Below the pieces are notes generated by a model. The model was not told where the DNA came from. It did not search any database and was given only the letters and a program-made list of their open reading frames with translations. Position numbers and translations under genes: made by a program. Positions 4,240 to 49,250 of a stretch of DNA of 64,000 nt are shown here, in pieces. Source of the DNA: Cycas panzhihuaensis (Eukaryota; Plantae; Cycadophyta); assembly GCA_023213395.1 (NCBI GenBank), contig CM041465.1, forward strand, positions 241,187,741 to 241,251,740. The letters run 5' to 3'. Positions within the stretch are counted from its first letter, which is position 1; each line of letters begins with the position of its first letter.

Positions 4240-4984
4240 AATTCAAGTCTAGGTAGTTGTTTCTAGTTTTATTAGGTAATTTTAGTGAGCTCAATTAAGG
4301 CAAAGTCATGGGTGCCTTTGGGTAGGGTTGGGAACCATGATAGATTATTTCTATCTTTTCTCCTTATTTGGATTCTCTATCTAGTTTCTATTCTAAACAC
4401 ACCCAATAGTGGATTTAGGAGCCTATTTTCATCATTTGATGCATATTTATAGTATTGATTCTCCATTTTTTAGGCCCTCCTATTATTAAGATGTATTTAA
4501 AGGAATTTATTACTTTGAATTTCTTAATTAATATTTAATTTAGAATGAAATATTATGCCTTATTTCTTATCAACTAATTTTGCAAGTTGGGAGTGTATTG
4601 AAAGATCATTTCTTTATGGGCAATAGAGCATATGGCATACTTCAGTTAGACCTAGGCTAAGTATTGAGAGCGACAGAGATAGAGTAGAGCACAAACTTCT
4701 CAATCCATTATTCAAAAAATTAACATAATCTCTAAAACATTGGTGGTGTTATAAAACACCAGGGTACTATGCCCTTGATATTTATAATTTGGGAGGCGAG
4801 CAGGAGCTTCCCTCAACCCACATAATTTTAAAATAAAATAATAATAAAGTATAAAATAAAATATACTTACCTTTATGTTGACTAAAATGGTTGGTGATAG
4901 CTCACATGCTCCCAAGGTGCTTGCACACTTTTAATAAATGGTAATGAGCATTAGGGTAACATTCTCCTCCATAATGTTCATTAC

Positions 4985-7900
4985 GTATAACTCCAAGCTT
5001 TTCTCTAAATTTATGAAACTTAATTTTTCCAAGTGCCTTTGTAAAGATGTCTACTACTTGATCTTTCACGCTGTAATAAACCAACTTAATTTTACCTACT
5101 TAGACAAGTTCCCAAATGAAATGATGCTATGTCTTGATATGTTTAGTTCTACCATGGAAGATCAGATTATATTTCATTTAAATGATGCTTTGATTATCAT
5201 ACCAAATCTTAGTAGGATTTTTTTGCTCCATCTAAAGATCATATAGAAGTCGATGTAACCACACTATTTTGCATGCATCTAAAATTGTTACCTTATACTC
5301 TACTTTTGCCATAGATAAAGAGACTGTATTCTACTTTTTAGTACTCCATGTAATAACTATTGAACCTAAGCTAAATGCATACCTAGATGTAAATTTTTTA
5401 TTATCAATATCACTTGCCTAGTTAGAATTTGTGTACCTAATCAATCTGAAGTTTAGTAAAGGTTTGTGGTATAACGCATAATTTGTTGTGCCCTTTAAAT
5501 ATCATAGAATACACTTAGTTGCTTGCTAATGAGAGGATTTAGGATCTTGAATAGACCTTAATACAACACTAATCATATGCATGATATTAGGTCATGTGGA
5601 TATCAAGTATATTAGGCCCCCAATTAACTATCTATATAATGTGGAATCCACTAGTGTAGAGTCATCAAGTTTGGATAGCTTAATATCAACTTTAGCTAGT
5701 ATAGATAAAACCTTACTCATCTTGAACTTTGGAATAAGTCTAAGGTATATTTTCTTTGAGAGCTGAAAATACCATTATCATCCTACCAAACTTCTAATCC
5801 TAGGATACAATGCATCAACCCCAAGTCAATCATTTTGAACTCTTTACACATGTTAACTTTGAATTTTTGAGAGAGGTAGGAATCATTTCCTGTATATATA
5901 AGGTCATCAACATAAAGTCCCATAATTAATATAGAATTTTCTTTAATTTTAATGTATAAATTTAGATCTAATTAAGTTTATTCAAATCCTTGGTATCTAA
6001 AATATTTGTCTATCCTAGAGTACCATGCTTTAGGTGTTTGTTTTAAACCATAAAGTGTCATTTTTAATTTATACACTTTATCTTCTTCCCCCTGACTTTG
6101 AAACCTTTTGGTTGTTGTATATATATATCTTCTTCAATGTAGCTATTAAGAAAAGAGATTTTAACATTCATTTGATGAACATCTTAGCCCTTTTGGGTGA
6201 CTAGACATAATATCATATGAACTATTTCTATCTATGCAATAGGAGTATTAGTTTCACTATAATCTATGCCCTCTTGTTGGGTATATCCTTTGGTAATAGG
6301 TCTAGATTTGTGTTTGTTAATAGATCTATATGATCTGAATTTAGTCTTATAGACCCATTTGGTTCTAATGGTTATTTTATTGGGAGTAAGATTAATAAGT
6401 TTCCATGTGTCATTTTTCAGTATAGAATTGTATTCTTCTTCAATAGCTTTCTTCCATTCATTATGAGTATCAACCTCTTCAAAAGTGTAAAGCTCATGGG
6501 TTTCCATTACTTGACTCAGAAGGGTAAAGTTAACCTTATGTAAATGAGTAGATCTTCTGTAATAGATATTGTCTAGAATGTTATCCAAGTCATGGTTTCT
6601 TTAAACCCATATAGGGAATCATTGAGGTTGAGAGTGAGAAAATAGAAAGATCTAAGTACATGTGCCTTGATTTGAGTACAACAATCAAAATATTCAAAAA
6701 ATAAAGAACATAAATAAGAAATATAATCATTCAATAGTATGGGTGAATTCACCACCCCATAGGCTCTCTCTCAGGTAGAGCTTTTACATTCATCAAAATC
6801 CAATATCAACTACAAAGGTGCAGGGTAATATTTATAGCCATCTATCAAGATTACAAAGCATTGTGATAGGTTGACTTAATGGCACAAGAGGTGTGCCTGA
6901 TCTCACTATCCAATATGATTTAATTATATAAAAGGGTCCATTAATACATTATAATCATGAGTTTACATAGACAAGAAGAAATAGAGGAGATATTACAATG
7001 TTTTAACAGAGAGGACGTTCCCTCACCACTTGGTCTTGATATATTAATATTTTACCTTGAATCCTGTCTAGGTGGCATATATGTGGACCTAGGAGATAAG
7101 TCAAAGTTTATCATAACATTCTTGCCTTTATCTTAGATACACTTTGAGTGATAATAGTCATCCTCTTTGAATACAACATCTTTACTAACCATGACCTTTC
7201 TTTCTTTGGGGTCATACACCTTATATGGTTTGGAAATATCAATATACCCAATAAACATATACTTAATGCTCTTATCATCAAGCTTGGCCCTCTTTTATTT
7301 AGGAACATGGACATAATCTAGGCATCCAAAGATTCTCAAGTGATGGATACTAGGTTCGTAACTAGTTTATGCTTCTTTAGGTATCATCCACTTAAGGACC
7401 TTGGTGGTATACCTATTTTGGAGGTAAACTATAGTGTGGACAACTTCTACCTAAAACTCATATCCCAATTTCTTGTCTTTTAGCATGCACTTAGCCATCT
7501 CAACTATGGTGTGATTCTTTTGCTCAGCAACCCCATTTTATTATGGAGTGTAGGGTTTGGTGTGTTATCTTCTAATGCCTTGATATATACAATAGGTATT
7601 AAATTTATTACAAATAAATTATCCCCTATTATCTGATCTTAATAAGAGTATCTTGTACCCACTTTACTTTTCTATAAAGGTTTTGAAGTCTATGAAACAT
7701 TGGAATGCATTTGATTTAAATTTCAAGAAATAAATCCATGTTTTTCTTATGTAATCATTAATGAATATAAGGAAATACTTTGCACTAGCTAATGATGGGA
7801 CATCCATAGGACCACAAAGATCTATATAGATTAAATAAAGTGGTCCCTTTTCACTATAACTTCCATTAGGATAACTTTTCCTATGTTATTTTACTAGGCG

Positions 7901-9566
7901 ATAACCTTCATAAATGTCCTTATCAACTTTGATTTATGGTAGCCCTTTAACCATATTCATTTTCTTCATAAGAGCTAAGCTTATGTAATTTAGGTGACCA
8001 ACTCTTTTGTGCCACATGTCACTATCTAATTTGATTGTAGTCTTCAAAGCATAGTTATCTGAGGGGGTTAAAATTAACTTGAATAGTTTATCCTTAGCAC
8101 CACTTTATTCTTTCTCTTATCCTTAATAGTGCATTCACCATTGTTAAATATGTCCTTATAGTCCTACTCCAATATCTATCCCACTGATAAAAGAATTTTC
8201 TTTGGAGTTGGAATGTAGAAAACATTGTCAAGATATCTGTCTTCATCTAAATCTATCATGATGATAACTTTGCCTCTTCTAATAGATTCATGTGAGGTAT
8301 CATCTCCAAACATGATTGAGCCCTTTCTAGTTCTATCAATGGTTTGAAATATTTGATCTTTATGAGTCATATGTGTAAAGAAATCTAAGTTAATGTACCA
8401 AAAATCCTCTCCCTTCTCATGTGCAACCAAACTTTATAGGAATAGATAATTGTTCTTTGTAGTTTCAACAACTGTATTAGCACTACCCCTTATAAGAGGG
8501 TCATTCTTGACAAAGCACCTATCCTTAGTATGGCTAACTTTATTATAAAATATACAATGAATCATATCCCTTACTCTTAGGCTAAGGCTCCTACTCCTAG
8601 GATATTCTCTATCAATGGAGGGTGTCCATCCTCTTTCCAACTATTAACCTTGATTATCCCTTTGTCTATTCTTAAGATTATTGAAGTTAGGCCTTTAAAA
8701 GTTGGCATGACTTGGATAATTTGGAAACATTGGTTTGCTTATTGATGTCTCTCTTAATTTTGATATCTTTATTAGCTAGGATATCTTTGATTTTCTCCTT
8801 GATTTCTTTAGTAGGGAGCTTGGTATCTAGGTTGATGTTCTTAATGTATCTTTTGTCTAGGATTTTGTTTCTCCCCCTTGTGGATTGGTTCGTAGATCTT
8901 AAACTTTCAACTTGGGATTTTGACTTAATCCTTGCTTTAGTTACAAGTGCATATTCTAGGGATTCACTTAAGCATTTTTTCTCCTTAACTGACATTAACA
9001 TAGCATTCAATTGTTCAATCTTTAATATACTTAGGTCTTTTAAGACTTCTATGCTTGTTTCTACTATCTCAAATCTCCTCGTTTCACTAATATACCTAAG
9101 AATCCTTTCAATAACCCTTTTCTTAGTTAGGGTTTACTAAGAGATCTCATCTAATTCACAAGGTCTTAAACCTTTATTATAAATTCATTGATAGATTCAT
9201 TGGGTATCATCTCAAATTTTTAAATCTACTCCTTAATGTTTGTAGGTTAAATGGCACTACACCTTCATAAATAATCTTCAAAATATCACATGCCTCCTTA
9301 GACTTAGATGCCTCACCAACCCTTAGAAAGATGTGGTCTTCTAAAGTATAAAAGATCAAAGTTAGAGACTCATTATCTTTCTTTACATACTCCTTATATA
9401 CTTAATTTTATGCTTTGGTTGTATTTTGACTGAGTTCTATGTAACCTCTCTTCATAATATCACATATATCTTTAGTAATGAGAATGGGTCTGATCCTCCT
9501 ACTCTAATTTAAGAAATTTAATCTATTAAATTTGGGAATTATCATGTTACCAAAACTATTTGCCAT
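4985..9566 (-). pseudogene. Copia-1 gag-pol (disrupted)
   Basis: ATG at 9566 (MANSFGNMIIPKFN..NF..W). Fragments THMT (PR), DLCGP (IN), EWKKAIEEEYNSILKNDTWKL/KGYTQQEGIDYSET and YVDD (RT), DQVVDIFTKAL (RH). Confidence 0.92.
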
Positions 9567-11084
9567 TGTATTTCAAATTAAAGTTTCATTCAAATTATTT
9601 TCCAAAGTTATAGGTTTTCCAAGTAAAATTTTGAAATGTGTCATATTCCCTAAGAAGGTTGTTAGGCTTTAAGTTTATAGTTTTCAAGGGAAGCCTTTAG
9701 TTGTTATTCTATCTAATGGCACCTACCCATTAGTGGAAAATTAGGGACCCAATAGATTAGTATGTGAGGTCTAGGCTCTATGTATCTCAATATGTGGGTT
9801 TCAAAGAAGGTGGAAGACCCCCTTAACTTATTGACAGATCTAATAGTTATGGCTTTATAAACCAAGGCACTCAGCCTCTCTAGGTCTAACCTTAGACCTC
9901 AAACTCTAATGAGGAAAGGTTTCTTACCTCAGTCTTCTACCTAATACACTTGATAGCTAATGACGTTCCTCATACAATATGAGTAGGGCAAGGGAATGTG
10001 CATGGTGGTAACTTTAAGGGTCCTAATCGTTACCCTTATAAGGCTAGAAAATTTGGAGGTTCTTTTAAGAGATTATCATATTTAATATAAAATATATATT
10101 TTATTTGTGGTCTTCTTTAGCAAATAAGGTTCATCCTTAATCAATAAATAAAAATAACATTACAATAAAATGAAAGATATATCACTTTAAATGAAATTAA
10201 TGTAAGATAAATGTTCCATTTTGAAATAAAATAAATATAAAACTAATAATCTTTCAAAATGATACAAATAAGCCTTAAAATAATATGAAATAAAAGGAAA
10301 ATAAAATAGCCTTTGAATGAGCTTATAAGCATGCAATAGGATGCACTCTAAGTGAACTTTTGAATGAAATAAAGGAACTTTAATTGAGCTTGAGATAGAC
10401 TTTAATAATAAATCATAAATCACCTTTAAATAAACCAAAGAAAGCCTAATATGAGCTTCAAGATAAAATGAACAATCTAAAAATAATCTATAAGCTTTTG
10501 AGATGCACTAAATACACTTTATATGAGACTTTAGGGTGTAAGAAAAATCCTTAAATGATCTTTAAAAAATAATCTCTAAAATGAAGTAAATTAATCCTTA
10601 AATAAGCTAAACAAGCTTGATATGAGCTTTAACATAAAATAAATGAGCTAGAAAATGAAATAGCATCTTTAAAATAAAGTTACTTAGGGTTTAGAAGACA
10701 CTTGTTTATGAAAATGGCATCCAAAGATCTTCTTCTCATTTAAGAGGTCAAATTTCACTAAAGACAATAAAATATCAGATGTGAACCTCTAAAAAGTAAG
10801 TGAAATTAGTTAAGGATGGATTAGTATCTAAACAAAATATAAATATGCTTAATATGATTAAATAGTTCAAAAATGCTAAAAAAAGCTTAGACTTAGGTCA
10901 AATAAAAGGGCTAAATTTATCAACCTTAAACTCCTATAAAATAGCCTTAAAACATAATAAAAATAGATTTAGTATATAGATTAGTGAATTAGCTTTCCAA
11001 AAAATCCAGTCGTTTGAAAAACAGACTCCTAGATCAAAAGTTATTAGCAAAATAATGAGGTCATCTCTTTGTGGCAAAAAACTA

Positions 11085-11790
11085 AACTAGGGGGGTTAAT
11101 CCCCTTTCAATAAAGCCCCTTGGTCACCTGAAGGGGGAATAGGACCACCCTCTGACTGGAAAAAGGGGCTACGAACTTGAATAATTATTAAAAAATTTAA
11201 ATTTTTAAAAATCTAAAATTATGAAATATGCCTTAATGGGTTTTCAAATTTGCCCTCAAATTTGAAAATTGAGGTTGTATGGAGCCTTAATGGAACTAAT
11301 AGCTAAGGCCAAGGGGGGGCTTACAAATATGAAAATATCTAAAATATAATTAAATTATTTAAAATCTAAAACCTTTGAAAAGGATTTAATTTAGTTTGAA
11401 ATTTTCTCCTTTTTATAAATGATCATAGTCAAGTGGAGGCATAGTTGACCACTGACTAGGGCTAGGGGCTAGCATAGAATATTTTAAAATTATATAGTCA
11501 AATATTTAAAAACCAAAAAATAATTAAAAGTAGCCTATATAGACTTGAGATCCATCCCTTTTGAGATTAAACCATAATCACGTGGGACTGCAAGAGGACC
11601 ACAAGCTAAAGCAAAGGGGGCTAGCATGTAGACTCCAAATATTATTAAATATAGAAAAATCTTTTAAAAACCAAAAATATAAAAGATAGTTAAATTAAAT
11701 TTAAAATCTACCCATTTTATAACCAAATCAAGGTCATATGATCTAAGCATATAACCATTATCCAAAAGCGAAAGGGGCTACAAATCAGTC
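11085..11790. repeat. Degenerate ~150-bp tandem repeat (about 5 units) in Copia-1 leader
   Basis: AAGGGGGCTA-like anchors at ~11163, 11311, 11464, 11614 and 11772, each followed by an AT tract ending TTTAAAAA(A/T)C(T/C)AAAA. Confidence 0.75.
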
Positions 11791-11972
11791 CTAAAAAAGA
11801 AGTCTAATTTAATTGAATTTAATCAAAACTTTTTTAAAAAATAAATATATGAATGAAACATATACATACTTTAACTAGGTAATAACCAGACAAAAATGTT
11901 GCATAAAAATTAATGAAAATTGATTAAAACAAATTAGATCGATCAACTAAAGGAGCAAAAAGAACATATGAA

Positions 11973-12073
<101 letters not shown>

Positions 12074-13738
12074 GATTGCCAACAGATCAAATGGAATAAA
12101 TAGTGAAGAATGTAGTAGACAAAGCATAGATGACTTAGATGGAGATCACACAGAGAATCCAACAAAGCACCAAATTAGGAGCAAATAAATGAATGATAAA
12201 ATCAAGAAGCTAGATATATATATATATTTTTTCAAAGAACAAAATAAAAAAAAAAAGTGAGAAAAAAAATAATAGATGGAGTGAGAGAGAGGGATACTGT
12301 ATAGTAAATATATTCTTACTATATAAATATATTTTCTTTACCTCCTGATGATGGATATAAGAGAGGGCACAAGCATTCATATGACACACAATCATGCAGA
12401 GGTAAAGGGAGAGTCCACTTAGGCTAGAAGGATGGTACACAAGGTGCTTTTGATGTCAAAATGAAGAGTAGGAGGTTATACAAAGGCTAAACCATACGAG
12501 AATACACAAGAGTTGGATGATAGGAATATAAAGGGCATACAAATATGTAGGAGGTCCATGGAGCTACTTTACAAGTACAAGCTCTAATACCAAATAAGAG
12601 CAATAGAGACAAAGTAGAGCACAAAACTTCTCAATCCATTATTCAAAAAATTAACATAATCTCCAAAATATTGGTGGTGTTAAGAAACACCAGGGTACTA
12701 CACCCTTAATATTTATAGTTTAGGAGATAGGTGAGAGCCCACCTCAACTAATATAATTTGAAAATAAAATAATAATAAAGTATAAAATAAAATATACTTA
12801 CCTTTATTCATTGATGGCTTATGGATAGCTAAAACAGTTGGTGATGGCTTGCATGCTCTCATGGCACTTGCACACTTTTAATAAATAGTAATGAACATTA
12901 GGCTAATAAGTATCGCTTAATGACATTATGTTTCCTTTATTTCAAGTTTAAATTAAAAGATAAGGAAGCCTATGGGAACCTAAGGACCACCTTTGACAAC
13001 TCCTAAGATGGAGTCTCTACCTATTTATATTATTTGGTTTGAATATAGGTATACGCTAACGAATGAAGGAAATAATATTTGCAGGAGAACAAGGCAGAAC
13101 ATATATCAAATAACCATAAACCAATATTGCATCAATACATCAATGTATCATAATCATGATAGCATAAACACAAGAAAGCATTATTGTTCAATCCATTATA
13201 GCAGAAATGAGTATTACAAATTTCTCAAATGTTAGAGGTGGTGTCTAAAGACACCAAGGTTGCACACCCCTTAATATTTATAGTTTGGGGGAGGAGGGAA
13301 ACTCCTCAACCCCTGAATTCAAAATAATATTAACTTAACTCAAATGAAACTAACTCAACTTACCTTAACTTACCTTGACATGTTGAGTATCACATGTCTA
13401 AATTGAAGATGGTTAGGTGTACAATCCTGGTTGGAAAGTGGGAGTGGAGTGATAACACTTAACTCCAACATTCTCCCCCTTAATGTCATCACGAACACTT
13501 GTATCTTTTCCTTAAACTTATGGAACTAGTACTTGAAAAAAGCTTTAAAATTCTGATCTTGATTAACATACTTTAACCTTCTTGTAAAATATATCTCTTT
13601 ACCAAGGAATGATACAAAGAAACTATAAGTAGATTATGCTCGAGTCAAGTCTGTATGTATAGATGTGGCTTTGTCTTTGTCAACTGAAACATTGAGAAAA
13701 TTTTGAATTTAAACTTTATCTTTTGTAATCTTTATGCT

Positions 13739-14227
13739 CTAAACAACTATCATATCATCAAGTTCATTCTTTGTCATATCATCACATTCATTCTTCATTA
13801 TATCATAAGATTCATCTTCATTCTCCCCCTCAAATGGAGGATCAAATCCTTGTGTAACAAGTTGGTCCTGTATTTGATCTGAATCTTCATTGGTTTTGTC
13901 ATCATGATCCACCTGTTCTGCCACCTGTCTTACATGCTCATTAAGAATATCATCAAATACATAGAAGGTATCTCCCCCATAAGTAGAAATCAATACATTC
14001 CAAACTGGTTAAAAAGTTGTTAGTTCAGAAACCTTTAAAAAAATATCATCATTCATAATGCAAAATAATAAACCTAAAACTTTATTATCTTTTCTAAAAT
14101 TTTCTTTAATGCTAAGGTCACATTCATATTATAAATACTTTAAAAGATCATGTTCAATAAAGTAAGTTTGCATGGTGTCATACCATAGTGAAAAGTTATG
14201 GCCATCAAAAATGGGGAATTGTGCCAT
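13739..14227 (-). pseudogene. Truncated Copia Gag N-terminus fused to an acidic tail
   Basis: MAQFPIFDGHNFSLW.DTMQTYFIEHDL...MNDDIFLKVSELTT..VWNVLISTYGG, then a D/E-rich ORF. A matching ORF occurs at 48563. Confidence 0.8.
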
Positions 14228-15817
14228 GTTATTAAAAAACTTTAGTACATATAAGGTATGCTTTTACTAAATCAAGAAGGTCAATAAATACAATGAATAT
14301 ATATAATTTCAAACAAATCTTTTAAAGTATATGTAATGCCTTTTGAAAAATAAATAAACTAAATGCAATAAAGAAATAATGAATATAGAAGTAACTTTGA
14401 GATCATATACCAATATCCCTTTAACGATACAAATCTGAATGTAAATTCTCAATACAATAAATCCTTAGTCTTGATAATAATGTATAATACTGAAAAAACT
14501 GAAATATATGTATATTTTACTTTGAAAGATAAGGAATATAAAGAAACTTTTTTTAAAAAAAGGGTTAGAGGACAACCTTAAGTTAGACAGCTTCAAAAAT
14601 ATACTAAATGATATCAGAATGATGTGAAACTTTACGAGTATGAAGATAAATAAAATATGAATCCAAAGGAACTAACCATTTTGAAAACGGGTTCCTATAA
14701 GTCAAGTTTTGATTAATCAACAAAACAAGCCTTATTTTGAGGCATAACAGGAGCAGGGGGCTCAAAATTACATAAAATCACTAATAAAACTTTAGAAAGT
14801 ATTGAAAAAATAATCAAATATGTTTTTTAAAACTACTAAATATATGTGTGGTTGAAAATTTTTGAAAAACTTTAAATGAAAATATATGAAAAATGACAGA
14901 TTAAGGCTCTAAGTAGTCCAAATTTAATAGATTTTAAAATAAGTAAAAACACCTTAAAACAGATGAAAAACTATGTCAGTTCGAAGGGGAATGAGTTAGC
15001 TTCCCAATGAAGCTAACAGAATTGAAATTGAAGGTCAAACAGAAAAGTTACAGTAAAAACAGTAACAAGTACCTCTATGTAAAAATGTTAAAAAAACACT
15101 AAAAACCACTAAAATGTCAATTTCAACAATTAAAATAATGGTTAAAATAAATTCTAAAAAATAAAATAAAATATGGGTTTTGAAGTTTGTTTAACTAGAT
15201 CAATCTGGAACAAATTTGGGCCAAAAATAGTTTCCAAGTAAGAAAATACAGTCAGATCAAAAAATGATTTTGTAAAAAGTTGAAAAAAGGCTGAAAAAAT
15301 GACAGATTGACTTTAAATCGACTGAAACTGGGTCAAATATGTACCAAATTAGTCATATGACCAATTAAAATTAATCTACAGAAAATTTCTAATCTAATGG
15401 AGGTGGTTTCATCTGAAATCGATGAGCTAATAAGAAGTTATGGCAAAAAAATGCCAATAACTCTATGTAGGATAAAAAATTAAAAAAAAATAAAAATAAA
15501 AAACATTTATAAAAAAATGAAAATCCCATTTAAGGACCACTAACGATCATGTGAGGGTTGAATATGACCAGGGGGATAGGATTCAAGGGTGCTTAAGCTC
15601 TTTAAACACCCATATTTGAAAATTTATACAATTAAATTTAATTTTTTAAAAACTTGATATTAAAAACTATATATAAAAACACAAATGAAATGAAAAAATA
15701 GCTACCGCCATTGGTGCACCGAATTTACTGGGATTGTAGATGATAATATTTATAAAATTGAATTGGCAGTTAAATATAAGTTGCACGATGAAGGGCTGCA
15801 ATATATATATTTGCATA

Positions 15818-15819
<2 letters not shown>

Positions 15820-15911
<92 letters not shown>
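15820..15911. repeat. (TA)n microsatellite at the edge of the cargo
   Basis: Direct reading. Confidence 0.98.
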
Positions 15912-15913
<2 letters not shown>

Positions 15914-15989
15914 GAAAAAGCTACATTGTTATTAAAGTATTAGATATTGCTACCACCACCTAGCACCACCACTTAACCTTTGTCTTTAG

Positions 15990-16161
15990 GAGAATGAATT
16001 AGAATTAAGCCGTGTGTATTTTGGACCAGACTTTCTGGTTTCTGAAAATGGCAGGTTCCGAAAATGGTAAGTTCCACAGGTGGAAGAATGGTAGGTTTGC
16101 ATATAGAAATGTTGATAACCAATGGCTGGTAAATGGGAGCTATATCAATTCGAGAATATGG
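15990..16161 (+). pseudogene. Captured two-exon fragment of an unidentified host gene
   Basis: TTTAG| exon 15990-16066 |GTAAGTTCCACAG| exon 16080-16161 |GTATG. Splices in frame to ENELELSRVYFGPDFLVSENGRFRKWWKNGRFAYRNVDNQWLVNGSYINSRIW. Confidence 0.6.
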
Positions 16162-16256
16162 GTATGATTTGGGACACGAGGAGCAAGACACACCAAAGCA
16201 ATGAACGTCTTTCTGAGGAGAACAACAATCTACCACACTAAAGCAAAATGGTTAGA

Positions 16257-16364
16257 TTTATCAATTTTCATAACCATGATCAAGAAAAACTAGTAATAGT
16301 GTTTATGAATGCCAAATATTTGGGTAGTAAGGCTATGTATGTAGGACAAGCACAAAAAAAAGTA
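16257..16364 (+). pseudogene. Captured poly(A)-binding protein RRM fragment
   Basis: FINFHNHDQEKLVIVFMNAKYLGSKAMYVGQAQKKV resembles plant PABP RRM3 (FVNF...A..A...MNG..LGSK.LYVGRAQKK). Confidence 0.75.
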
Positions 16365-16690
16365 GTGCCGCCCCTACGACTGCATCTGTGTCTGCGTCTA
16401 CACCCTTTTGATTAGTGGAGGCTTTTTTTTTTTTTTTTGTTACAGTAATAATAACTTTCCATGTAAAAACCTCACAGGATTGGAACCGAAGAAGATCAAT
16501 TCATGCAAAGGCACTGGTGGAAAAAATTACTCAAACACCTCTAAAGCCGATTGTAGGTACTACAGGAGAGTCACTGCTAAGCAGAAGTTGACTATAATGG
16601 TGCAGGTTACAGAAATCGGGAGTCGAGCGAAGCCATGCTAGCAGGGAGCCGAACAGAGCCACGCCACGTAAGGAGGAAACCCACGAAGAC

Positions 16691-16862
16691 CCTCTTAGAG
16701 GCAATGCTGCAGTGGCTAGGCTACGCAAGATAAGAATGTTGAGTAGTGGAATGACGAATAATAATGGCACTAAGATGTTGAGGTTTTATACAAATGATGC
16801 TCTCAGCGAGGACTGTTGTATTAGTGATGAGCTTGGGATTCATTGGATTTGTGACTGCTCAT
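16691..16862 (+). pseudogene. Captured Sec61 beta subunit fragment
   Basis: PLRGNAAVARLRK...KMLRFYTNDA, a small deletion/frameshift, then [16 protein letters not shown]. Matches plant Sec61beta [33 protein letters not shown]. Confidence 0.88.
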
Positions 16863-16890
16863 ATTAAGCCATGGCTCCCAGTGAGGAGGA

Positions 16891-16951
16891 AGCTCCCAGC
16901 GAGGGTCGAACTCGTGACCTTTCATTTACTAAGCGAACACATGACCACTGA
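16891..16951 (-). tRNA. tRNA-Thr(AGU) 3' fragment (pseudo-tRNA)
   Basis: rc: CAGTGGTCA..TTCGC-TTAGTAA-ATGAA-AGGTC-ACGAG-TTCGACC-CTCGC-TGGGAGC-T, i.e. anticodon arm (AGT), variable loop, T-arm and 3' acceptor strand. The 5' acceptor strand is missing. Confidence 0.75.
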
Positions 16952-16952
16952 A

Positions 16953-17842
16953 AGCAATTCTTCAATGAGAAGACGTTGAAGACAACTGGTCACTCCCAGT
17001 AGTGTTGAACAGATAAAAATGCGCTCCTTCGAGAGTGATTTTGATGAGAATCCTTCTATGCTTGTTTCTAGAGTGGTATATTATCTTTTATCATGCAGTA
17101 TGATTCTGCTTAATAAAAATTGTTCTCTCAATTTACAATTTTGATGCTAGAATTTCACTAATGTTTTACTAGAACCTTGTCAGTGTGACGATTATCTCTA
17201 GTTGAGTTCTTGTCAATATTATATTCGTTGAGATGCTTCTTACAAATATTTATAGTTTGAAATACATAAATGTTCCAATGTTGATGAGGCTCAAAAAACT
17301 GTGGAGAGGCTTGGAGGGAATTGTTATCATTTTTATGGAGTCACAATATTAACTTTGCATATGGATTTATAGCCCCTATTTATTACTGTTTTTTCTAGAT
17401 AGGAATGTTGATGGAAGAAATATAGTAGTTCAGAAGTTGATGAGAAGATTCAACAGTCCAAAGAGTTTCTTGAATCCCTCAAACTTGGCAACTATTTTAT
17501 GTTTTTTCTGTTTCTGCTCTTTGTTTATCTTCTGTGTGCTAAATAGCTTGGTTAGTGGACTTGCCTCTATTTCTTGTGGACTCTCTAACTAGAGAATATA
17601 TGCTATTCAACCAAGCTGAAGATTGATACTCTAGTAGCTTGTTTATACCAATGTAAAGGATGGATTTCAAATAGAAATAATAGTCTTTTTGATATTGGAG
17701 ATGTACGCATGTATACAGAGAAACTTTTAATTTCAAAATGGCTGCTTTTATGCTTTCAACCTTGTAGCAGGTTGTAAAAGAGAGATATGGCTCCAATCCT
17801 CAAAGAAACCTTAAATGTTTCAAATATTTTTTTGATTAGGAA
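16953..17842 (+). pseudogene. Captured four-exon genomic fragment of an unidentified host gene
   Basis: Exons ~16953-17075, 17403-17487, 17547-17702 and 17771-17842 with GT(GC)-AG introns and phase-compatible joins: ..QIKMRSFESDFDENPSMLVSRV|EC*WKKYSSSEVDEKIQQSKEFLESLKL|AWLVDLPLFLVDSLTREY..NNSLFDIGD|VVKERYGSNPQRNLKCFKYFFD. Some C>T stops and one frameshift. Confidence 0.65.
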
Positions 17843-18098
17843 GTATATTATTTTGTTCTTGGAATACTAGACTTTGACTACTTTGAAGTGACTTATGTTT
17901 GATTTTCTTTGTTCAGTTTTAGCCAATCTATGGTAATAATATCTATGGCATGTAAGCAAATAGCAATATATAGCATATAAATAGTAACAATGAAGAAATA
18001 TTTTTAAAAAATAATGTTCAAGAAATGAATGAAAATGAAGGAAAATAATAGTAAGTCTTATAATTATATTGTAATGGAACTGAAAATTTTGTTTTCAG

Positions 18099-18236
18099 AT
18101 TATGAGAGCTCCTCAAAATACTGTGGATGGGACAAAAACTGATGAGGCTAATTTTGCCACCTTGTTGAGTGCCATAGAGAAAACTCCTGGCTTGTACTTC
18201 TCTTATGATGTTGATTTGATAGTTAATGCACAAAGA
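18099..18236 (+). pseudogene. Captured SAC1-family phosphoinositide phosphatase fragment
   Basis: After TTTTCAG: ..KTDEANFATLLSAIEKTPGLYFSYDVDLIVNAQR, matching the plant SAC6/7/8-type motif DEA.F..LL...E.TPGLYFSY..DLT.N.QR. Confidence 0.85.
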
Positions 18237-19671
18237 TTTTATAGAAATTTCTTCAAATAATAATAGTAAAAGATACTTATTGGAGGAATATACTCATAAA
18301 ACAGAGTCACAATATTAAGAAAATTTTCAAATATTTTGAAGAGAATATATCACAAAAAACTCTTATATATTTGTATTTAAAAATTTTTAGAAATATGTTG
18401 AGCAAATATATAAAAGATATGTGTAAATCTAAAAATGGAACTGAAGAACCTAGAGAGAAGTTGAAGCAGGATATGCACCCAAAAGCTGTAGATCTAAAAA
18501 AACTTGAAAATATAGTCAAAAAATATAATGAAAAATATAGATCTGAAATTAAATACAGCACATCTGAACTAAGTGTAGTAGAAAATACTGAAAAACTTGA
18601 TAAAATAGCAGATCTTAAGCTAAATAATGCAGATCTGACGTGAGTATAGCAGATCTATAGCCAAATAATATAGATCTAAATGAATATATCAGAAAAATAG
18701 TCAAATAACTGCTGAAATAAGTAGATATGTAGACTATGTAGTAGATCTAAAGTGAAATGTAGTAGATCTGAAAAAAACTTATATGAGTCTTGCTTGCAGC
18801 TGAAAACCTTCACAGATCTGAGAAAATATTAGATAAGTAGATAAAAATTTGCCAAGAAATAATGAAATGTATAGTAAAATATATAAATCTTAAGAAAAAT
18901 AGCTCAAATCTGAGAAAAAACTTGAGTAAATGTAACTTACTGTTGATCTCCTTCACAAATCTTTGAAAACATATAGCTTGTAGCTGAAATCCTTCATAAA
19001 TCTGTACAAATCTTTGAAAAATCTAAAAAAACACTTGTTATATCACAAAAATAACTCAATAATGAGATAATCTTGATGAAAAATATATAAAACTTACTAA
19101 AAATTTTTCAGAAAGCTAATATATCTTGCTTATAAGAAAATCTGCCATAGAATGCCAATAAATCATGTTGCTCTTCTTTAAAAACTTCACTAACGGAGAT
19201 GCAATAGCCCAAAATCTTGCTCTTTCGAAAAACTTCACAGATCAGTAATCGCCTGCTCTGATATCAAATGAAGGAAATAATGTTTGCAGGAGAACAGGGC
19301 AGAACATATATCAAATAACCATAAACCAATATTGCATCAATACATCAATGTATCACAATCACAATAGCATAAACACATGAAAGCATTGTTATTCAATCAA
19401 TTGTAGTAGAAATGAACATTACAAATTTCTCAAATATTGGAGGCGGTGTCTAAAGACGCCAAGGTTGCACACCCCTTAATATTTATAGTTTGGGGGAGAA
19501 GGGAAACTCCTCAACCCCTGAATTCAAAATAATAATAAAATAATGTTAACTCAAATAAAACTAACTCAACTTACCTTGACATATTGAGTATCACATGTCT
19601 AAATTGAAGATGGTTAGGTGTACAATCCTGGTTGGAAGATGGGAGTGGAGTGATGACACTTAACTCCAACA

Positions 19672-22600
19672 ATGAAAGCTAGGATGTAAGGAGAGATAGT
19701 AAAATCCCTAGCTTATACAAGCAAGTAGAGTAGTTCTAAGTTTGGAATTATACAAACAATATTTTTTGTATCCTTCTTAGGAACTCATTTTCTTATATTG
19801 TTTCAATTTTCTAGGTTTACTATAATAAATAAAAGGGTTAAGTAATAGAAAGTTTTTTTTATTTTTTTTAAATGAAAGCAAAAGAAAGAATAATGAAACA
19901 ATAAGGTCTAACTACATTTTTTTAAATCAATTAAGAAAGTAAAGCATGCATGCTATTTCTTTTTTGCTTCTCTTTTAAAATAAAGAACAAACTAAAAGAG
20001 ATATTATTTCCTAAAGATGTAAAGTATATTTTTTTTCAAACACCAAAGTAACTAGCATGAGATATAAATAGTGTGATATGCAATATTGTATGTAACTTTA
20101 TGGGAGCCAAAATAACATGCTAAACTTACACAAAACTTTTTTTTTCATGCACATGCTATTTTGACTTTTTAAGAATGATTTTAATATAAATAAGAGATTT
20201 CAAACATGATTTCAATAACTAAGAATGATATGCAACCTATAAAGCTTACATGCAATTAGCTATAGCTGATATCCTTATAAGTAAATGATAAATTGAAATC
20301 ATAAAGAGATTCTATCACTCATGAAATTTTTTAGACATCATGGGATCATTGAACTTCATTTAAATTAATTTTCACAATGATATATTATTCATGCACGCAT
20401 GTTCCTTTTATAAAAAAACAAAAATGAAGAAAAATAAAATCAAGGAATGCAACACCAATAATTTTTAAAAATTTTAATTCTAATAATGAATTCTTGCCTC
20501 AAAATAGCTACCTCCCTTTAATAAAATCAATCTTTTCCTTAAAATAAGAATGAACAAGAAGGAAACTAAGAAGAACAAGCTCAACAACAATTAAGAAATA
20601 AGAAAAAAGTAAGACTAGGTCTCTTAGGAAGCTTGAATAATTGAGAAGAATGAGAGAGAGTAGTTATGTTTCGTGGTGAAGAGTTAGATCTCTGTTTATA
20701 ATAGATAAATTCCTTAGTTTCCCACAAAAAGCTGATCTTTCAACCAAGGTTTTCTAAGGAAAAACATAGATGAAGGAGTTTTAGAAATTAGAAGAAAGAG
20801 AGAAGTATATTTGGTCGCAAGAAATCATTAAAAGAGTACCAAATCAAAAGGAAACTAGAGTACAAAAGACCTTACCAAAGATGTGAAGCTTGAAGTAAAG
20901 AGTTGTAATAAACCAAGTACCTTAAGAAGCAACAACAAGTTAATTTTGAATAATAATCAGATAACAATTGGAGCTCTAGATCTCTTCTTTTGACTTCACT
21001 TTTCTTTTCTCAAAGATGGATATCAAAATCACCAAGTAATCTCTTAATTTTTTTAAGAATTCACTCTTGAAAACTTAGTATCAATCTCACAACATATGAA
21101 TGAATCGACTCTTTAGGGTTTTACAGGGTTCTAAGCATAAATGGAGTTAGTTTCCATTGAATCTAGGTGATACCATATAAAACTAGTGTATTATTTAAAA
21201 AAATTCCATGCATGATGGTAAAAAACGTGAACAGTTATATTTTATTAACAACCAAAAATGTGATTTTATTAATAAAATGTGATCAATTATATTTTTAGTA
21301 GAATAAAAATTTCAATAAATCAAGAGAAAAAAATTACTCATTAAAAAGTTAAAAATTATTTTTTTATTAAAAAAATTATGTAAAAATGACTTAATCAATA
21401 CAAAAGAGTAGACCAAAAGGGGTGAAAACTTAAGCATAAGCCCAAAAATCATGAAAAAGTGATGATTTAAAAATAAAATAAAGAGAAAAATAATAAAATA
21501 AGTAAGAGTTTCAAGCCAAAAAAGATGAGTCATCATGATCATAAAGGCAAGATTTTATTACTATAGTTTTCACTTATTGGGAAATGAAAAAATATAATAG
21601 TACAATCATCATCATTTAACATAGATCATCAAAAAAGCAATAGTATATTTCATCAAAATACATCCTAATACAATATAGATCAATCTTCAATTAATCATAT
21701 CAAATGTAAATAAAGTAGAAAACTTTTTATGATAATAAGATCAATTGAGGGCCATGTTTTGGTGAAATATTTTTCCCTTTGGTACCTAACGCTCCTACTT
21801 CAAAAGAGAAGTTGGATGGTAAAAGGTGACAATGAGCATGATAAAGGTTTTTCTCAAAAAGGTAAAAGGTTTGGATGAGGTATGTAAATGATAGAAAACT
21901 AGCCTACAAAAAATGCTAAAATCAAACTAGATAAACCTTGATGTCACTAGAATGATAAGCTGAAAAGTATTACCAAAATACCTACCCAAATGGACATGGC
22001 TTACACTTACTTGATTGGAAGAAACACTAAATACCCACAAACTATATTGGACTTAAAACCTAGATAGCCATAGTTTATCTCTCATTAACCACATTTTGGA
22101 GAAAGGTCCCTTTGTTAGAGCATAAAGGATAAACTATTATAGTTTTTTGAGCTCATTAACAAATGACTTTTCAAAGCCTTAGACTACCATCGTTTCAACT
22201 CATTAGTAGGTGACTTTTCGAATCTTTCCATTATAGTTTAAACTCATTAATAGAAAAAGGGGCTTAGAGATTTACACTCTCATAGTTTAAGTTCTTCAAT
22301 AAGTAAGAGAGTTTAAAGTTTTTTTAGGGCCAAAAATAAGGATTAAAATAAGAACCAGAATGGGTAAGGGATAACATATCTAGGCCTTCAAAATGCTCAT
22401 TAAAAGTTGAATAAATTAAGGTCAATAATAACCCTAATCAATAGGAAATACATCATTTTCTAATTTCAAAGAGAATTTATCTATAAACAAATATTATTAA
22501 GAGATAATATTAACTTGAATGAATGAAATAGATAAAAGAAAAGTTTTGCTGAGAAAGTAAAGAAAAGCCCTCTCTATTTTTATAATAAAACTTGATATAT

Positions 22601-37450: not shown

Positions 37451-37579
37451 AAGAATAAATATATATATAATCAAAGGGGGTTAGGGCGACGCGGACCCGA
37501 CCGAATTATGTTATTTTTGAGAGAAAGTTAAAATTAAGAATCATTTGGGATCCAAGGGGGGGTAAGGGAGGCAAAACCC

Positions 37580-38620
37580 TACTTGGTAAACCCAATCATG
37601 GCAGTGGCTCTGTTTGGTTCTCTCTTGCTTCGAGTCACTCCATCAAAGACACTAGCTAAAGGTGGCTCGATTGACACGTTTAGCTTCTAGGTTGAGACAT
37701 TGAGGCATTTGGCTTCCAGTTTAATGCAGATTTGAGTAGTTATGGAGGCATCAAACCCTCGCTGAGGTTTTAGAAATAAGAGCGGTGAGGGTTTAGCGAT
37801 GATCGTTGGAAATTCTCTCCAGCTACAAGTTTGATGGCTTCGGTTCTTCGGCGGCAAAGTGATGGCATCTGAATTAGATTTAAACCATACCATCCGTAAT
37901 GTAAGGGTTTCAAGTCTTGACTTTTTCGTCATCGCAGGTCTTTATTGACTGTAATACCTGTTTGTATATTCTTTCACCATTAGATTACATCTATAATCTT
38001 AGGATCTGTATAATCTAGAGGAACTCTCTTGTGTAGAAATGATTTCAATTTCTATTTGTATTGGCTAGTGAACTGAAGGTCTGCAAGTCTCAGTCTCGAA
38101 AGACACAAGATGTCCTGCCAATTCCTGTACTATCTTCCTCCTACCATTTCTATTATAATATATAATTCCAGAGACAGCATTGAAGTGACTTTATTCAACT
38201 TTCTGTTGGCTTTTAAATCCAAACCATTTATTCAGCATCACAGGTGTATGCATTTGAGCGATCACTTTGACTTTCTATTGGTTTCTGGTACAACCTTATC
38301 AATGAAGCCCTTGACAATAATGCAATCAAATCGAAGCTTGTAAAATCTCATCTTTTTGTAATACCAAATTCCATATGATGGGAGGCAGATAGGGGCAACA
38401 ATAGAGGGCAAGCTCATATCAGGTCTATTTTCAAGACCCTTGCCCACATGAAATGATGCCAAACAGACAACCTTCTGTCTATGTGTTGCTACAAGCATCT
38501 TCCCCAAGAATTTTCTATGACTATCTCAGCTTGCCTGCTATTCATAAGATTCAACCAGGATTGTGGATGTGTAGTGGTTCAATTCCAGAGAATTCAATAC
38601 TATCTTGTAGAATCGCCTCT
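37580..38620 (+). other. Gene-like, CpG-retaining cargo in Copia-2 leader (unidentified)
   Basis: Higher GC than flanks. ATG-initiated pieces (MAVALFGSLLLRVTPS..; MASELDLNHTIRN|VFID) with short GT..AG segments at 37901-37937 and 37951-37983. Confidence 0.45.

Positions 38621-41714: not shown

Positions 41715-41746
<32 letters not shown>
41715..41746. repeat. (TA)n microsatellite
   Basis: Direct reading. Confidence 0.97.
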
Positions 41747-41947: not shown

Positions 41948-42591
41948 TGTTGAGAATACAAGGTCCCCAAACCTTTTAACCGCTACCAAGATCTATTGCA
42001 TTCTTACAACTAGTTACAGAAATCAAAACTTAAGATTACATGCAAGTTATAAAATTAGAGATTATACAATAACATAAAAATAAAAGCTAAACATCACATA
42101 TGCACCTGATATAACGTGGTAAAACCCTAGCAGTATGCTAGGAAAATATCCACACAGGAAAGGTATCGATCTTTATTGCTATAAAATGGAGAAACAGTAC
42201 ATCTCAGTTACAGAGTGCTCTCAGGAATAACAACCAGCCGCCGCCCTCATCACAGTACATTACATTATATACAACATAATAAGAAAAGCCCTAAAATGGG
42301 CTACATAAGAGGGATATCTAGAGCATAAATCTCAACCATAGAATCTAGGGTATTTGTATCGAACAACCCTAATTCTCTTTATATTTTACTATGCTTTACA
42401 TGGCTAATTTTTCAGGTTGGGGCTATCGCCCGCGAACCCCAACCTAGCGGGGGGCGTTCCATACCTCCCGTACCCCCTGGCCAAGGGGGGCTCCTGCCCT
42501 CCTTAAAACTCCCCAAGAAAGATTAGGGGGGGAAACCGTGCCGAAAACATGCCAAAAATTTAACTCATAATTGTTGTCACAATATCCAACA
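41948..42591 (-). mobile_element. Young solo LTR nested in element C
   Basis: TGTTGAGAAT...ATATCCAACA with TTTT on both flanks. Contains the GTGG(T)AAAACCC motif seen in the other minus-strand LTRs; CpGs retained. Confidence 0.7.
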
Positions 42592-44469
42592 TTTTCATCC
42601 ATCAAAGAGGTGTGTTTGGACTAGTTCAGTTTTCATAAAGAATAATCTCTCAGGCATAGAATGGAGGCATCTTTAATAACAACAACTTTAGCATGGGCCT
42701 GACCTTGTCTCTCATCCTTTAGGTCATGTGGTTGAATCCACAAGCGCAACTCTTAGTGATATATAAAGAGTATTCGCTTGATGAAATTATTTACTAAAGC
42801 AGATCAGGGACATTGTTGGCTATTCAACATAACATCCAGGTTTGGAGGATTTGTATATGCTATTGTCCTTGCCCATGGATATTACAAGTTTCATGACTGC
42901 CCTTTGTTGTTTAAGCTTAATGCATATGATTTGACCATGGAGACATTGAATACTATTAGCAGTTGTAATGTTCCTTTGAAATGGCTACGTCATAAAAGAA
43001 GACTAAGATTAAGGAGGCATTAGCGTTGCAATAATCTGAGGTTTGACTCGAGCAATTGGGAATGAATAGATGAATACTGTGGCATCTTATAATGAATGAA
43101 CAGGCACTACTGGAAGGGTGAGAGCATTGATCCAGACTCTTTGAAGGGGAAGTTAGATCATTAAATTAGTTGTTCTGGTACTTGTCTTATTCAGAAAGGG
43201 GTGGCCATGTCGACATTATTAGTAGCCAAGCTTACAAGAACCTTGAGGTTCAATACTATCTTCTCCCACTTTTCACGAATAAATGCTCTACGAGCGCTTA
43301 TAGTAGGACATGAATATATTTAGAATTTCACTTCTCACATTATAGCAGATTCCATATCCTCAAGAGTTTGAAGCTTTAGATATAGAATGGATTTCCTCCA
43401 TAATACAATGGTGACACAGACCTCGTGATGAGGAAACCTGCAAATACTGGTTCCTCATGGCGGTGCCCTGCAAATACCTTACCATGACTATAATGGTGAA
43501 TAGCATCCAGAATATTGAAGATCATGGCGAAGCCCTGCAACTCCATGGTGAATAGATTTCATCTCATGGTGATGTTAAATTTTGACCTACAACTTCGACC
43601 ATCCATGGCGACATCCTAAAGATATGGATGGATAAAATAATAATAGTTGAAACCCTAAAATTTTAGGGTATTCATCTTGCATTAATGATTTTGACATATA
43701 TCATATTTTGGCATATATTATGTTGGTGGATTTCGTCATTTTATTAAAAGGGGTTAAGTTTATTTTTTTGCATATTGAAATTTAAATTTAAATTAATTGT
43801 ATAGTGTTTCAAGTCCACCAACCCCTCATCACTTCAACCCCAAGTCTCATGGAGCTCTCAGACGACCACCAAAAATCTCGTGGAGGGGGCTAGTCCCCAT
43901 TTTTATTATTTTCTAGAGTACCGGTCACCTTTTTGGCTATATCTTGAGATTGGGAGGTCCTTTTTTAGTCCCATCTGTTGCGTTAGGCCTGTAACAGAAA
44001 GACCTTTAATTTGGAAGGTCATTTGATATATTTTGAAGATGTTTTCATGGAGATTTTTTAGTTGAAAGTCATAAATTCTTATTTGTCTTTATTTTTTCTT
44101 GACTTCTATTAGTACATATTACATTTTCGAGGTTTCTTGATGTAATGTACCCCAAATGGGGGGATGACATGTACCATGGACTTATTTTTTGGCTCTTAAA
44201 TAACCCATTAAGCTCATTTTGTACTTCATTCTATGAGAGAGAGTTATATATGCTACACTTAAGTCACATATCATTTTTCAATCATGTAAAAACTTCTAAT
44301 GATGGTTGTTTTGCCCATGGTGGCAAGTTATTAGCCCAATGAAGCATTTTTTAGCCCATATGGCATGTTTGAAGCCATATTGCTATTGTATTTCTAGCTA
44401 TTAGATGCTAAAGAAGTGATAGTCCTATTGAGAATGAGGTATGACACACTTTTAAAGCTACTCTTACTT

Positions 44470-44499: not shown

Positions 44500-45856
44500 C
44501 TTATATATTTTTCTACTTACACTCCCATATGAGCAAGGGGTGGAACCTTATTCAGCTACTCTTGCCAGCTCCTAATTGATCCACGTATACAAAGGGAGTT
44601 CCTACCCAACTCACCGTTGCAACGGCTAATGACCCATGCATTCTAATAGATGAACTCTACTTCATATAGACTTTTGCAGTTTTTTAATTCTGTGTAGCAG
44701 CATTTGTGATCTAGCAGACTTTTGAAAACTCGAGCTTATCATTGATGTGATGACATTTACGTAATTGACTATAAGGGGGAATATTTGGTGTAATACCTAA
44801 TTATATTAACCTTATGTAAACTTTATCTATTTCTTGTATTTTATATTAGAGTTGTGGGCCACCTTAATATGTGTGCCACCTCTAAGTAGACAAATGGGAT
44901 TCTCTCACTAGTGATGAGCTAGTATTATAAGTATGTACTCTTCATTGTTCATAATTAAGTTTTGGCCAATTCTCCACACATTGAGTTTATTGTTGTACAT
45001 ACTTCATCTTTTTGTACTTTATTCTTTATCTCTTACTCATCATTAGGGTTTTATATGATTATTGCATTTCTAGTTCTAACATTGAGTTTGTTGGTACATG
45101 TAAAATTAAGATAATAAAAGAATACTTTATATAATATATAACTAATAAGGTAAGATAATATAATATATGGTATTAATAGAATCTAAAATAATCATCGCTT
45201 AAGAATGAAGTTTATTTGTCAAAAGATAAGCAAAGGAATCTATTGGTACACTAAGAAGTATTATGCAATAAAAAAGGATTTATGTATATTTTCTCTCTTT
45301 AAAATCTCTCTAAGAACCCATTAAAAATTATAATTTATTAGAGAATCAAGGCCAAAACAATCAAAAGTGATTGAAAATTCTTTTATTACATTTTTACATA
45401 ATTATTTTATATATAATATATGATTGGTTGCATAATGCACTTGAATGGATCATTTAAGAGTAGATCCTTAAGCCACTTATCATAGAAAATTAGAAGAATT
45501 TGAATTCATTCCATTGAAGTAACTATATGTTGGGGTTAATGTTCATCACGTCACTTCCACCATTTAAACATGTGAGTGCACACATGTGAAGGTAAGTGAG
45601 ATGAGGTTAAGTGTTATTTTAGTTAAGTATTATTTTAATATATTTTAAATTTTGAAGGTTGAGGAGGTTTCCCTCTTCCCTCAAGCTATGTATTTACTGG
45701 GGTGACAAACCATGGTGTCTTTTAACACCACCTCCATTTTGGAAATATGTGCAAGCTCTCAAATATGGATTGAATGTAATATTTGGTTAAAGATCATATA
45801 ATACAATTGATTGATCATTTTGTTTATTTCTTTGCTCTGTCTCCATGTTTTCAAAT

Positions 45857-45940
45857 CCTTCATTTGGTATCAGAGCTTCTTAGTAAAGCGTTCATTTGGT
45901 ATCAAAGCTTCTTGGCAAAGCCTTCGTTTAGTATCAGAGC
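45857..45940 (+). repeat. Three 32-bp tandem units, each with LTR end plus iMet PBS
   Basis: PBS copies at 45865-45876, 45897-45908 and 45929-45940; unit CCTTCATTTGGTATCAGAGCTTCTTGGCAAAG. Confidence 0.92.
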
Positions 45941-48562: not shown

Positions 48563-49250
48563 ATGGCAATGTATATGAATGATGTGTTAATTTCTACACT
48601 TGATGGGACCAATTTTCATGTATGTAAAGGATTATTAAAAATACTTTTTATTACAAAAGATATTTAGAAATTTGTAGCATATAGTTACCTAAAGGAATAA
48701 GAAGATTTAAAAAAAAAAAAACCTAATAAATGATAATAAAATCATAGCTTTAATATTTAGTACAATCAATGATGATATATTTGTTAATATTAGTGAATTA
48801 ACTACATCTAAGTCCATTTGGGATACACTAAAATCTATTTATAGAGGAGAAACCCTCAATGTGAATGAATTTAATTATGATAATGATATATATATAAGAC
48901 AAATATTAGAGTAGGTTTTTCATGTTGAAAATATTAATGTAGAAGACTCAAATCGAATGAATGATCACATTGGTGCACATGAAGATGTTTATACATTTGA
49001 CATAATTGTTACTTATAAAACAAAGAATCCAGAAGATAGAATAAAAGATGTAGTTATTCTTTTCTATTTGAAGTAAGTCACACTCACTTGGAGATTGCTT
49101 GAATTAAACTATGTTGAAGGAAACCATTATATAAGAACAAAGATACATGAAGATGAAGGGAAAACAAAATGATATTTGGTCAAGTGCTCATTGAAAGCCT
49201 ACATCAAATATATGTACCACAAGTTTAAGGAAGAATAAAGATGTTCGTGA
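48563..49250 (+). pseudogene. Truncated Gag plus acidic tail and RNase H end of element B
   Basis: MAMYMND...LDGTNFHV...INDDIFVNISELTTSKSIWDTLKSIYRG. Confidence 0.8.

Follow-up and report, generated by a model that had tools for sequence, protein, structure and literature searches.

A mosaic of host gene fragments, RNA-derived in at least one place, in the leader of a gag-only Copia element of Cycas panzhihuaensis

[quoted passage not shown] LTR-mediated retroposition in Drosophila and vertebrates has yielded exon-only mosaics of several genes (Tan et al., 2016; PMC5131818), and the gene-carrying TRIMs include GmaRetroS15 of soybean (Gao et al., 2016; PMC4717578). Capture of gene fragments has also been described for Copia elements, both in the maize Sireviruses, of which only 3% carry fragments, with no orientation bias and a preference for 3' exons (Muyle et al., 10.1101/777037), and in a study of transposable elements in the giga-genomes of gymnosperms, in which orientation and position were not analysed (PMC13477047). 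The words 'antisense' and 'intron' are absent from a 2026 review (PMC13317346), and therefore no antisense, intron-containing LTR capture is described there. Here, we examine an LTR element of the cycad Cycas panzhihuaensis that lies at 13064-19671 in a 64,000-nucleotide (64-kb) stretch of contig CM041465.1 (assembly GCA_023213395.1, positions 241,187,741 to 241,251,740 of the forward strand; hereafter the window, to which all coordinates refer). A first-pass annotation, made by a model from the sequence alone, had read the leader of this element, the carrier, as a Pack-type mosaic of at least six host loci, all antisense to the element and with their introns retained. Our analysis supports a mosaic of host pieces, and places the locus among LTR captures of RNA rather than of intron-bearing genomic DNA.

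The leader of the carrier extends for about 5 kb from the primer-binding site (PBS) to gag, and about 2.5 kb of it (15912-18486) is foreign to the remainder. This cargo block is a composition island on the plus strand, with a GC content of 0.38-0.46 and a different skew, set between leader flanks of GC about 0.25 that are T-rich in the element sense; its right boundary is uncertain, falling between 18246 and about 18800. The block has no match elsewhere in the window, and it corresponds to the extra 2.5 kb or so that the carrier possesses over a gag-only relative at 45527-49531. Together with the protein matches described below, the island bears out the earlier description of the leader as a patchwork of several unrelated host genes. 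Two short perfect repeats flank the cargo region: a 14-bp inverted repeat (15612-15625 / 18321-18334), with no target-site duplication (TSD) alongside, and a 13-bp direct repeat (15907-15919 / 18523-18535) in DNA that is AT-rich.

The piece nearest the right end of the block is a fragment of a SAC-domain phosphoinositide phosphatase on the plus strand. In a search of 1.84 billion representative proteins, the open piece at 18084-18257 gave seven matches at E <=1e-3 (best E 7.5e-7), six of which were Syja_N (SacI-homology) proteins, and tblastn placed the match at 18105-18245 only, with E values of 1e-10 to 1e-11. These matches identify 18105-18245 as SAC phosphatase in origin, in agreement with the first-pass annotation. 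Three loci in public collections (L020, P0002 and P0006) are isolated open reading frame (ORF) fragments that cover exactly the SAC exon; P0006 has unrelated flanks on both sides of the exon, and may represent intron read-through or a captured copy in another plant. A stop-free plus-strand frame of 130 codons (18251-18640) lies in the A-rich leader adjoining the SAC piece, and exceeds the maximum of 118 reached when the leader was simulated 2000 times under a Markov model. Pfam and PDB yielded no match to this frame, which may reflect a local poverty in T, a further piece of cargo or an antisense ORF.

When metagenome data were scanned with aligned genuine SAC proteins, 29 plant loci were recovered, and these allow the structure of the SAC piece to be compared with that of its counterparts. 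In six of six genomic plant loci, the D-L-T-L codons lead into an exon end of AA and an intron that opens with GTA.GT, and two cDNA-type contigs continue with N-L-Q-R at the same junction. At 18222-18236 the window has GTT AAT GCA CAA AGA (V-N-A-Q-R), corresponding to the spliced form. By this comparison, the SAC piece runs across the junction of two spliced exons, which falls between positions 18226 and 18227, and the cargo is identified as RNA-derived in at least one place. The exonic, parent-intron-free state that characterizes Bs1- and TRIM-type cargo is thus found at one SAC junction. The window is also uninterrupted at the position of a second intron, found in four angiosperm-type SAC loci, which is neutral because this intron is missing from the most similar locus as well.

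The introns and splice sites that the first-pass annotation had reported as retained find no counterpart at the SAC junction, and fare no better in the leftmost piece of the cargo (15990-16240, plus strand), which had been described as a gene of two exons. Its 'shrunken intron' of 13 nt sits inside a 16-nt tandem duplication (16040-16075, detected by TRF), and no family was found for the piece in Pfam, NCBIfam, PDB or Atlas. The T-rich plus strand of 17000-18100 is equally expected of the coding sequence (CDS) or untranslated region (UTR) of a membrane protein as of introns.

A second host gene is represented by an RRM fragment of poly(A)-binding protein (PABP) at 16254-16364, again on the plus strand, which matches yeast Pab1 (PDB 6r5k, E 4.6e-4) and the TIGR01628 PABP-1234 family (E 0.018). 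Its origin from PABP, already proposed in the first-pass annotation, is supported by these matches. A third piece, at 16697-16859 on the plus strand, is probably a coding part of Sec61beta that has lost an internal stretch and suffered a frameshift. Its membrane segment (16812-16859) matches Pfam Sec61_beta at E 0.015, which is not significant alone since about 80 short pieces were scanned and a spurious phage terminase scored E 0.004; the two Sec61beta pieces were searched singly and never joined. The upstream motif at 16775-16801 fits the N-terminal part of Sec61beta, and we regard the earlier identification of this piece as probable. In sum, sequence homology establishes a host origin, with strand, for two to three pieces.

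The stretch at 17019-17812 had been described as a gene of four exons; it looks instead like one contiguous, intronless and repeatedly frameshifted transporter CDS on the plus strand, although this is a lead only. Its neighbours in Atlas (TPT, Nuc_sug_transp and SLC35F, at 0.78-0.84) are sub-threshold and belong to one transporter superfamily, and segments resembling an N-terminus and a C-terminus lie about 790 nt apart. Scans of Pfam, NCBIfam, PDB and the metagenomes were all blank for this stretch. It also seems to resemble GONST1 of plants, a likeness that gained no confirmation from the formal searches. As a lead, therefore, 17019-17812 could be an intronless CDS of a nucleotide-sugar transporter of the GDP-mannose type. 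No homolog in Pfam, PDB or Atlas was found for 16478-16556, leaving its designation as a further exon without support. All pieces split by frameshifts or stops were searched singly, with no joined or repaired reading. Matches to DUF3741 (E 0.0057) and to a carbohydrate oxidase (E 0.21) were treated as chance because the phage terminase had scored E 0.004 in a like scan. As a control, ten open pieces from the minus strand of the cargo were searched, and none was assigned to a host family.

The SAC, PABP and probable Sec61beta pieces all lie on the plus strand, and are therefore antisense to the carrier. To this extent the earlier statement that all fragments are antisense holds for the recognisable coding pieces, but it may fail for two other features of the block. 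One is a run of T16 at 16423-16438, which is A16 on the element-sense strand; no homopolymer of the window is longer. This run may be what is left of a poly(A) tail, belonging to a piece captured in sense at 16439 to about 16600, in which case it would indicate an RNA origin once again while breaking the rule of uniform antisense orientation. The other is a tRNA-like stretch on the minus strand (16891-16950), sense to the element, in which parts like a T-arm and an acceptor and motifs like box A and box B can be discerned by eye. The first-pass annotation had called this a tRNA-Thr; ARAGORN (at very lax settings too) and Rfam (in cut-off mode too) detected no tRNA in the cargo, and the stretch may simply be 3' UTR sequence that accompanies the Sec61beta fragment.

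The carrier itself is a 6,608-bp LTR element on the minus strand. Its direct LTRs, the 3' copy at 13064-13470 and the 5' copy at 19269-19671, both begin with TG and end with CA in the minus-strand reading, and differ by 6.3% over 397 aligned columns (21 transitions, 4 transversions and 2 indels; Kimura two-parameter distance 0.067). The flanking TSD reads ACGAA on the left (13059-13063) and ATGAA on the right (19672-19676, beside the 5' LTR), with four of five bases equal. A PBS of the tRNA-iMet type (19255-19266, minus strand) begins 2 nt past the 5' LTR and matches at 11 of 12 positions, and the polypurine tract (PPT), a run of purines at 13471-13482 on the minus strand, abuts the 3' LTR on its upstream side in the element sense. 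The LTRs, PBS, PPT and flanks therefore represent one insertion of a minus-strand LTR element and, with the homology of gag described next, confirm the TSD-bounded, two-LTR Copia derivative of the first-pass annotation. Two related Copia elements have in their LTRs, on the minus strand (12652-12696 and 13215-13260), a hairpin resembling the stem-loop of the histone 3' UTR, scoring 26.2 and 23.9 bits against Rfam RF00032 (E 5e-4 and 3e-3), short of the gathering score of 34.

The only coding remnant of the carrier is the N-terminal part of a Copia-type gag (13742-14227, minus strand; the coding part runs from 14227 to about 13900). This remnant has no Pfam match of its own, and is recognised by its similarity to the gag piece of the relative at 45527-49531 (BLASTP E 4e-12; DNA 70% identical to 48714-48862), which in turn matches Pfam Retrotran_gag_2 at E 4e-8. 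No motif of pol (protease, integrase, reverse transcriptase or RNase H) was found from gag to the PPT, and hence the carrier is classed as a Copia-type LTR retrotransposon that has gag only and is non-autonomous. Native leader is present on both sides of the cargo: the gag-proximal part (14265-15800, minus strand) has a GC content of 0.25, is T-rich in the element sense and contains degenerate tandem repeats, and the PBS-proximal part (18487-19250, minus strand) is about 60% identical to 46034-46411 and 45562-46302 of the gag-only relative. The ends of the leader are weakly collinear with the leaders of relatives at 10363-11052, 11654-12070 and 47232-47902 (gag-proximal part).

Two of these relatives are particularly informative. 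The first (45527-49531) is a 4.0-kb gag-only element with LTRs that are 74% identical, a gag and 3' end collinear with those of the carrier, and no cargo block. Its LTR end and PBS are triplicated as a 32-nt unit (45857-45940), and strand transfer would therefore seem to be error-prone in the family to which the carrier belongs. The second (4667-12906) is a related Copia element that retains RVT_2. Taken together, a gag-only and an RVT_2-bearing relative place the carrier in an old non-autonomous Copia family. Every retrotransposon of the window is heavily decayed, and the sole ORF of at least 150 amino acids in the window is one of 168 amino acids at 50390-50896 on the plus strand.

The cargo adjoins, on its gag side, a TA microsatellite (15801-15911) with 46 perfect units at 15820-15911. 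A (TA)46 tract occupies the corresponding place in the neighbouring Copia element (11977-12068) and is likewise followed by homologous sequence on its gag side; by this alignment, the tract is a conserved leader feature of the family. Indeed, four Copia elements have TA microsatellites at similar points of their leaders (11977-12068, 15820-15911, 41716-41745 and 37460-37469). The interval from PBS to TA tract is 512 nt in the first of these, 3.34 kb in the carrier, about 490 nt in the third and about 1.26 kb in the fourth, and the intervals are mutually unrelated in sequence. Two of the other Copia elements contain GC-rich leader islands (GC 0.41-0.57, at 37470-38600 and 42329-42600) that could be cargo. 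What can be said of the carrier is that its cargo lies beside the TA tract, in non-coding sequence where a non-autonomous element tolerates it.

We tentatively favour the view, without regarding it as probable, that the leader acquired a chain of reverse-transcribed, processed host RNAs by LTR-mediated retroposition. Such a chain would comprise SAC phosphatase and PABP, probably also Sec61beta, perhaps the nearly complete mRNA of a sugar-nucleotide transporter, and further pieces. We infer the mechanism of capture, its timing relative to integration and the role of the TA tract as follows. Reverse transcriptase may have switched templates, by microhomology, among RNAs co-packaged in the virus-like particle, and the self-complementary TA tract may have been the point at which the enzyme paused, exited and re-entered. 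If the host RNAs were copied during synthesis of the plus DNA strand of the element, the coding pieces would end up antisense; at that stage the RNA of the element would already be degraded, and host RNAs would be the only intact RNA templates. The gag-only backbone, held in common with the cargo-free relative, favours retroposition.

It is also tempting to speculate more broadly, although we consider this doubtful, that a Copia lineage possesses a hypervariable slot between PBS and (TA)n, in which each member holds its own library of mostly antisense housekeeping transcripts, and that the resulting RNAs act as antisense or small interfering RNA (siRNA) triggers directed at host genes, or perhaps as camouflage for the element. 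In that case, reverse transcriptase, while making the plus strand, would repeatedly leave its template at (TA)n and turn to host mRNAs packaged alongside.

Several observations weigh against capture by retroposition as proposed here. The cargo is single-copy within the window, and any transposition after its capture would be hypothetical. A single spliced junction has been formally established, to which the downstream exon contributes only about 4 codons, and the count of oriented pieces amounts to two that are well supported, one that is probable and one that is a lead. The A16 run and the tRNA-like stretch are in sense, and such a mixed orientation is not predicted by uniform template switching. 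Known LTR-mediated retrocopies lie in sense and replace coding sequence, and here pol disappeared in an older event of its own, common to the cargo-free relative. Finally, in four further Copia elements of the window, Pfam scans of the leader intervals that vary (37470-38600 and 42329-42600 on both strands, 12069-12581 and 46432-46650) revealed no host fragments, a result of low power.

The cargo might instead have arisen after integration, by breakage of the cruciform-prone (TA)46 tract and its repair with filler from cDNA or RNA-templated pieces, to give a one-off mosaic that never transposed. This explanation, which we judge unlikely but still take seriously, agrees with the position of the cargo directly beside the tract, with its uniqueness in the window and absence from 45527-49531, and with the possibly mixed orientation of its parts, A16 and the tRNA-like stretch in sense and the coding pieces in antisense. 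Yet a 2.5-kb filler of five or more RNA-derived pieces would be exceptional, and four recognisable coding pieces all lie on one strand. Moreover, the cargo is not clearly younger than the insertion because it seems to have decayed at least as much as the LTRs (several frame breaks per kb vs 3% LTR change per lineage). Alternatively, by target-primed reverse transcription, an endonuclease nick made by a long interspersed nuclear element (LINE) in the T-rich strand of the leader could have started the copying of host RNAs into cDNA and, through template jumping, produced a chimeric retrocopy antisense to the element. Chimeric retrocopies made by LINEs are on record (PMC2104539), and the strong A/T skew of the leader, the spliced origin of the SAC piece, the location of all coding pieces on the A-rich strand and the 13-bp direct repeat, which could be a TSD, would all accord with such an event. 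It is nevertheless improbable: poly(A) is missing from the right end, where it would be expected and where the piece found (SAC) is an internal segment of its mRNA and not a 3' end, T16 is on the wrong strand, homology to the relative seems to extend about 35 nt inside the putative TSD, and six or more parts are far above the number in known LINE chimeras.

The first-pass annotation envisaged a Pack-type carrier of genomic or pre-mRNA pieces, the introns of which survived because they are antisense in the RNA of the element. Several open pieces of the plus strand are indeed bordered by AG and GT, what looks like a canonical 3' splice site stands immediately upstream of the SAC match, and the T-rich plus strand of 17000-18100 is intron-like. 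We nonetheless hold retention of introns to be quite improbable, given that the SAC piece lacks an intron present in all six genomic loci, that the 13-nt 'intron' is a tandem duplication, and that the T-richness is equally expected of the sense strand of a membrane-transporter CDS; in addition, the proposed 'introns' of 49 nt and 112 nt would need to be chimeras of two genes, and the 'exon' at 16478-16556 is without a homolog. Least credible of all is a Helitron, Pack-MULE, CACTA or other DNA transposon with gene fragments nested in the leader. The TA-rich insertion site, the uniform orientation of the coding pieces and the perfect 14-bp inverted repeat could be cited in its favour, but the spliced junction speaks against capture at the DNA level. 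Scans of both strands disclosed no hairpin with a CTRR Helitron end, and there were no long terminal inverted repeats (TIRs) and no TSD at the 14-bp repeat. The first-pass annotation had named bounding by Helitron or MULE termini, together with occurrence outside these LTRs, as evidence against its reading; neither is seen within the window.

If the layout of this leader recurs in the genome, a particular step of reverse transcription, or else a particular fragile site, would be implicated in a systematic import of antisense host transcripts. This could in turn lead to exon shuffling, add to the pseudogene load and bring small RNAs into cross-talk with housekeeping genes. If it is a one-off, the cargo is an ordinary though elaborate scar of retroposition or repair.

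Among known systems, the multi-gene mosaics of Pack-MULEs, Pack-CACTAs and Helitrons resemble the carrier in being a patchwork from several genes within a mobile element, but they consist of genomic DNA with introns and are bounded by TIRs or Helitron termini, neither of which was found here. The analogy with these elements is mistaken because of the spliced SAC junction, and because the tRNA, the 'shrunken introns' and the '4-exon gene' fail as described; the fitting analog is LTR-mediated retroposition, as in Bs1 and the soybean TRIMs. As in maize Bs1, in the retrocopies of PMC5131818 and in yeast Ty1 assays, partial, intronless mRNA pieces of several genes lie between LTRs with a TSD, and template switching by reverse transcriptase, by which LTR-mediated retroposition arises, is proposed here too. 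The carrier differs in that its coding pieces are antisense and lie in the leader beside a TA microsatellite, whereas the retrocopies of Bs1 and PMC5131818 are in sense, driven by the LTR and replace coding sequence, and in that its loss of pol is a separate, older deletion.

Like GmaRetroS15 (PMC4717578), the cargo of which derives from exons only of three host genes, the carrier is non-autonomous and has two LTRs and a 5-bp TSD. TRIMs are, however, only 1.2-1.4 kb long, without gag, and their cargo-bearing copies are multi-copy, in contrast to the carrier, which is 6.6 kb long and has a leader of 5 kb and a remnant of gag. The captures of maize Sireviruses and gymnosperms also involve Copia elements with exon fragments, sometimes several per element, and siRNA cross-talk with the donor genes has been proposed there; the cargo of the carrier is specific in position and has its coding pieces on one strand. 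RNA-based capture is itself known, and what is new here is its position in the leader, beside a conserved TA tract, together with coding pieces that run backwards with respect to the element.

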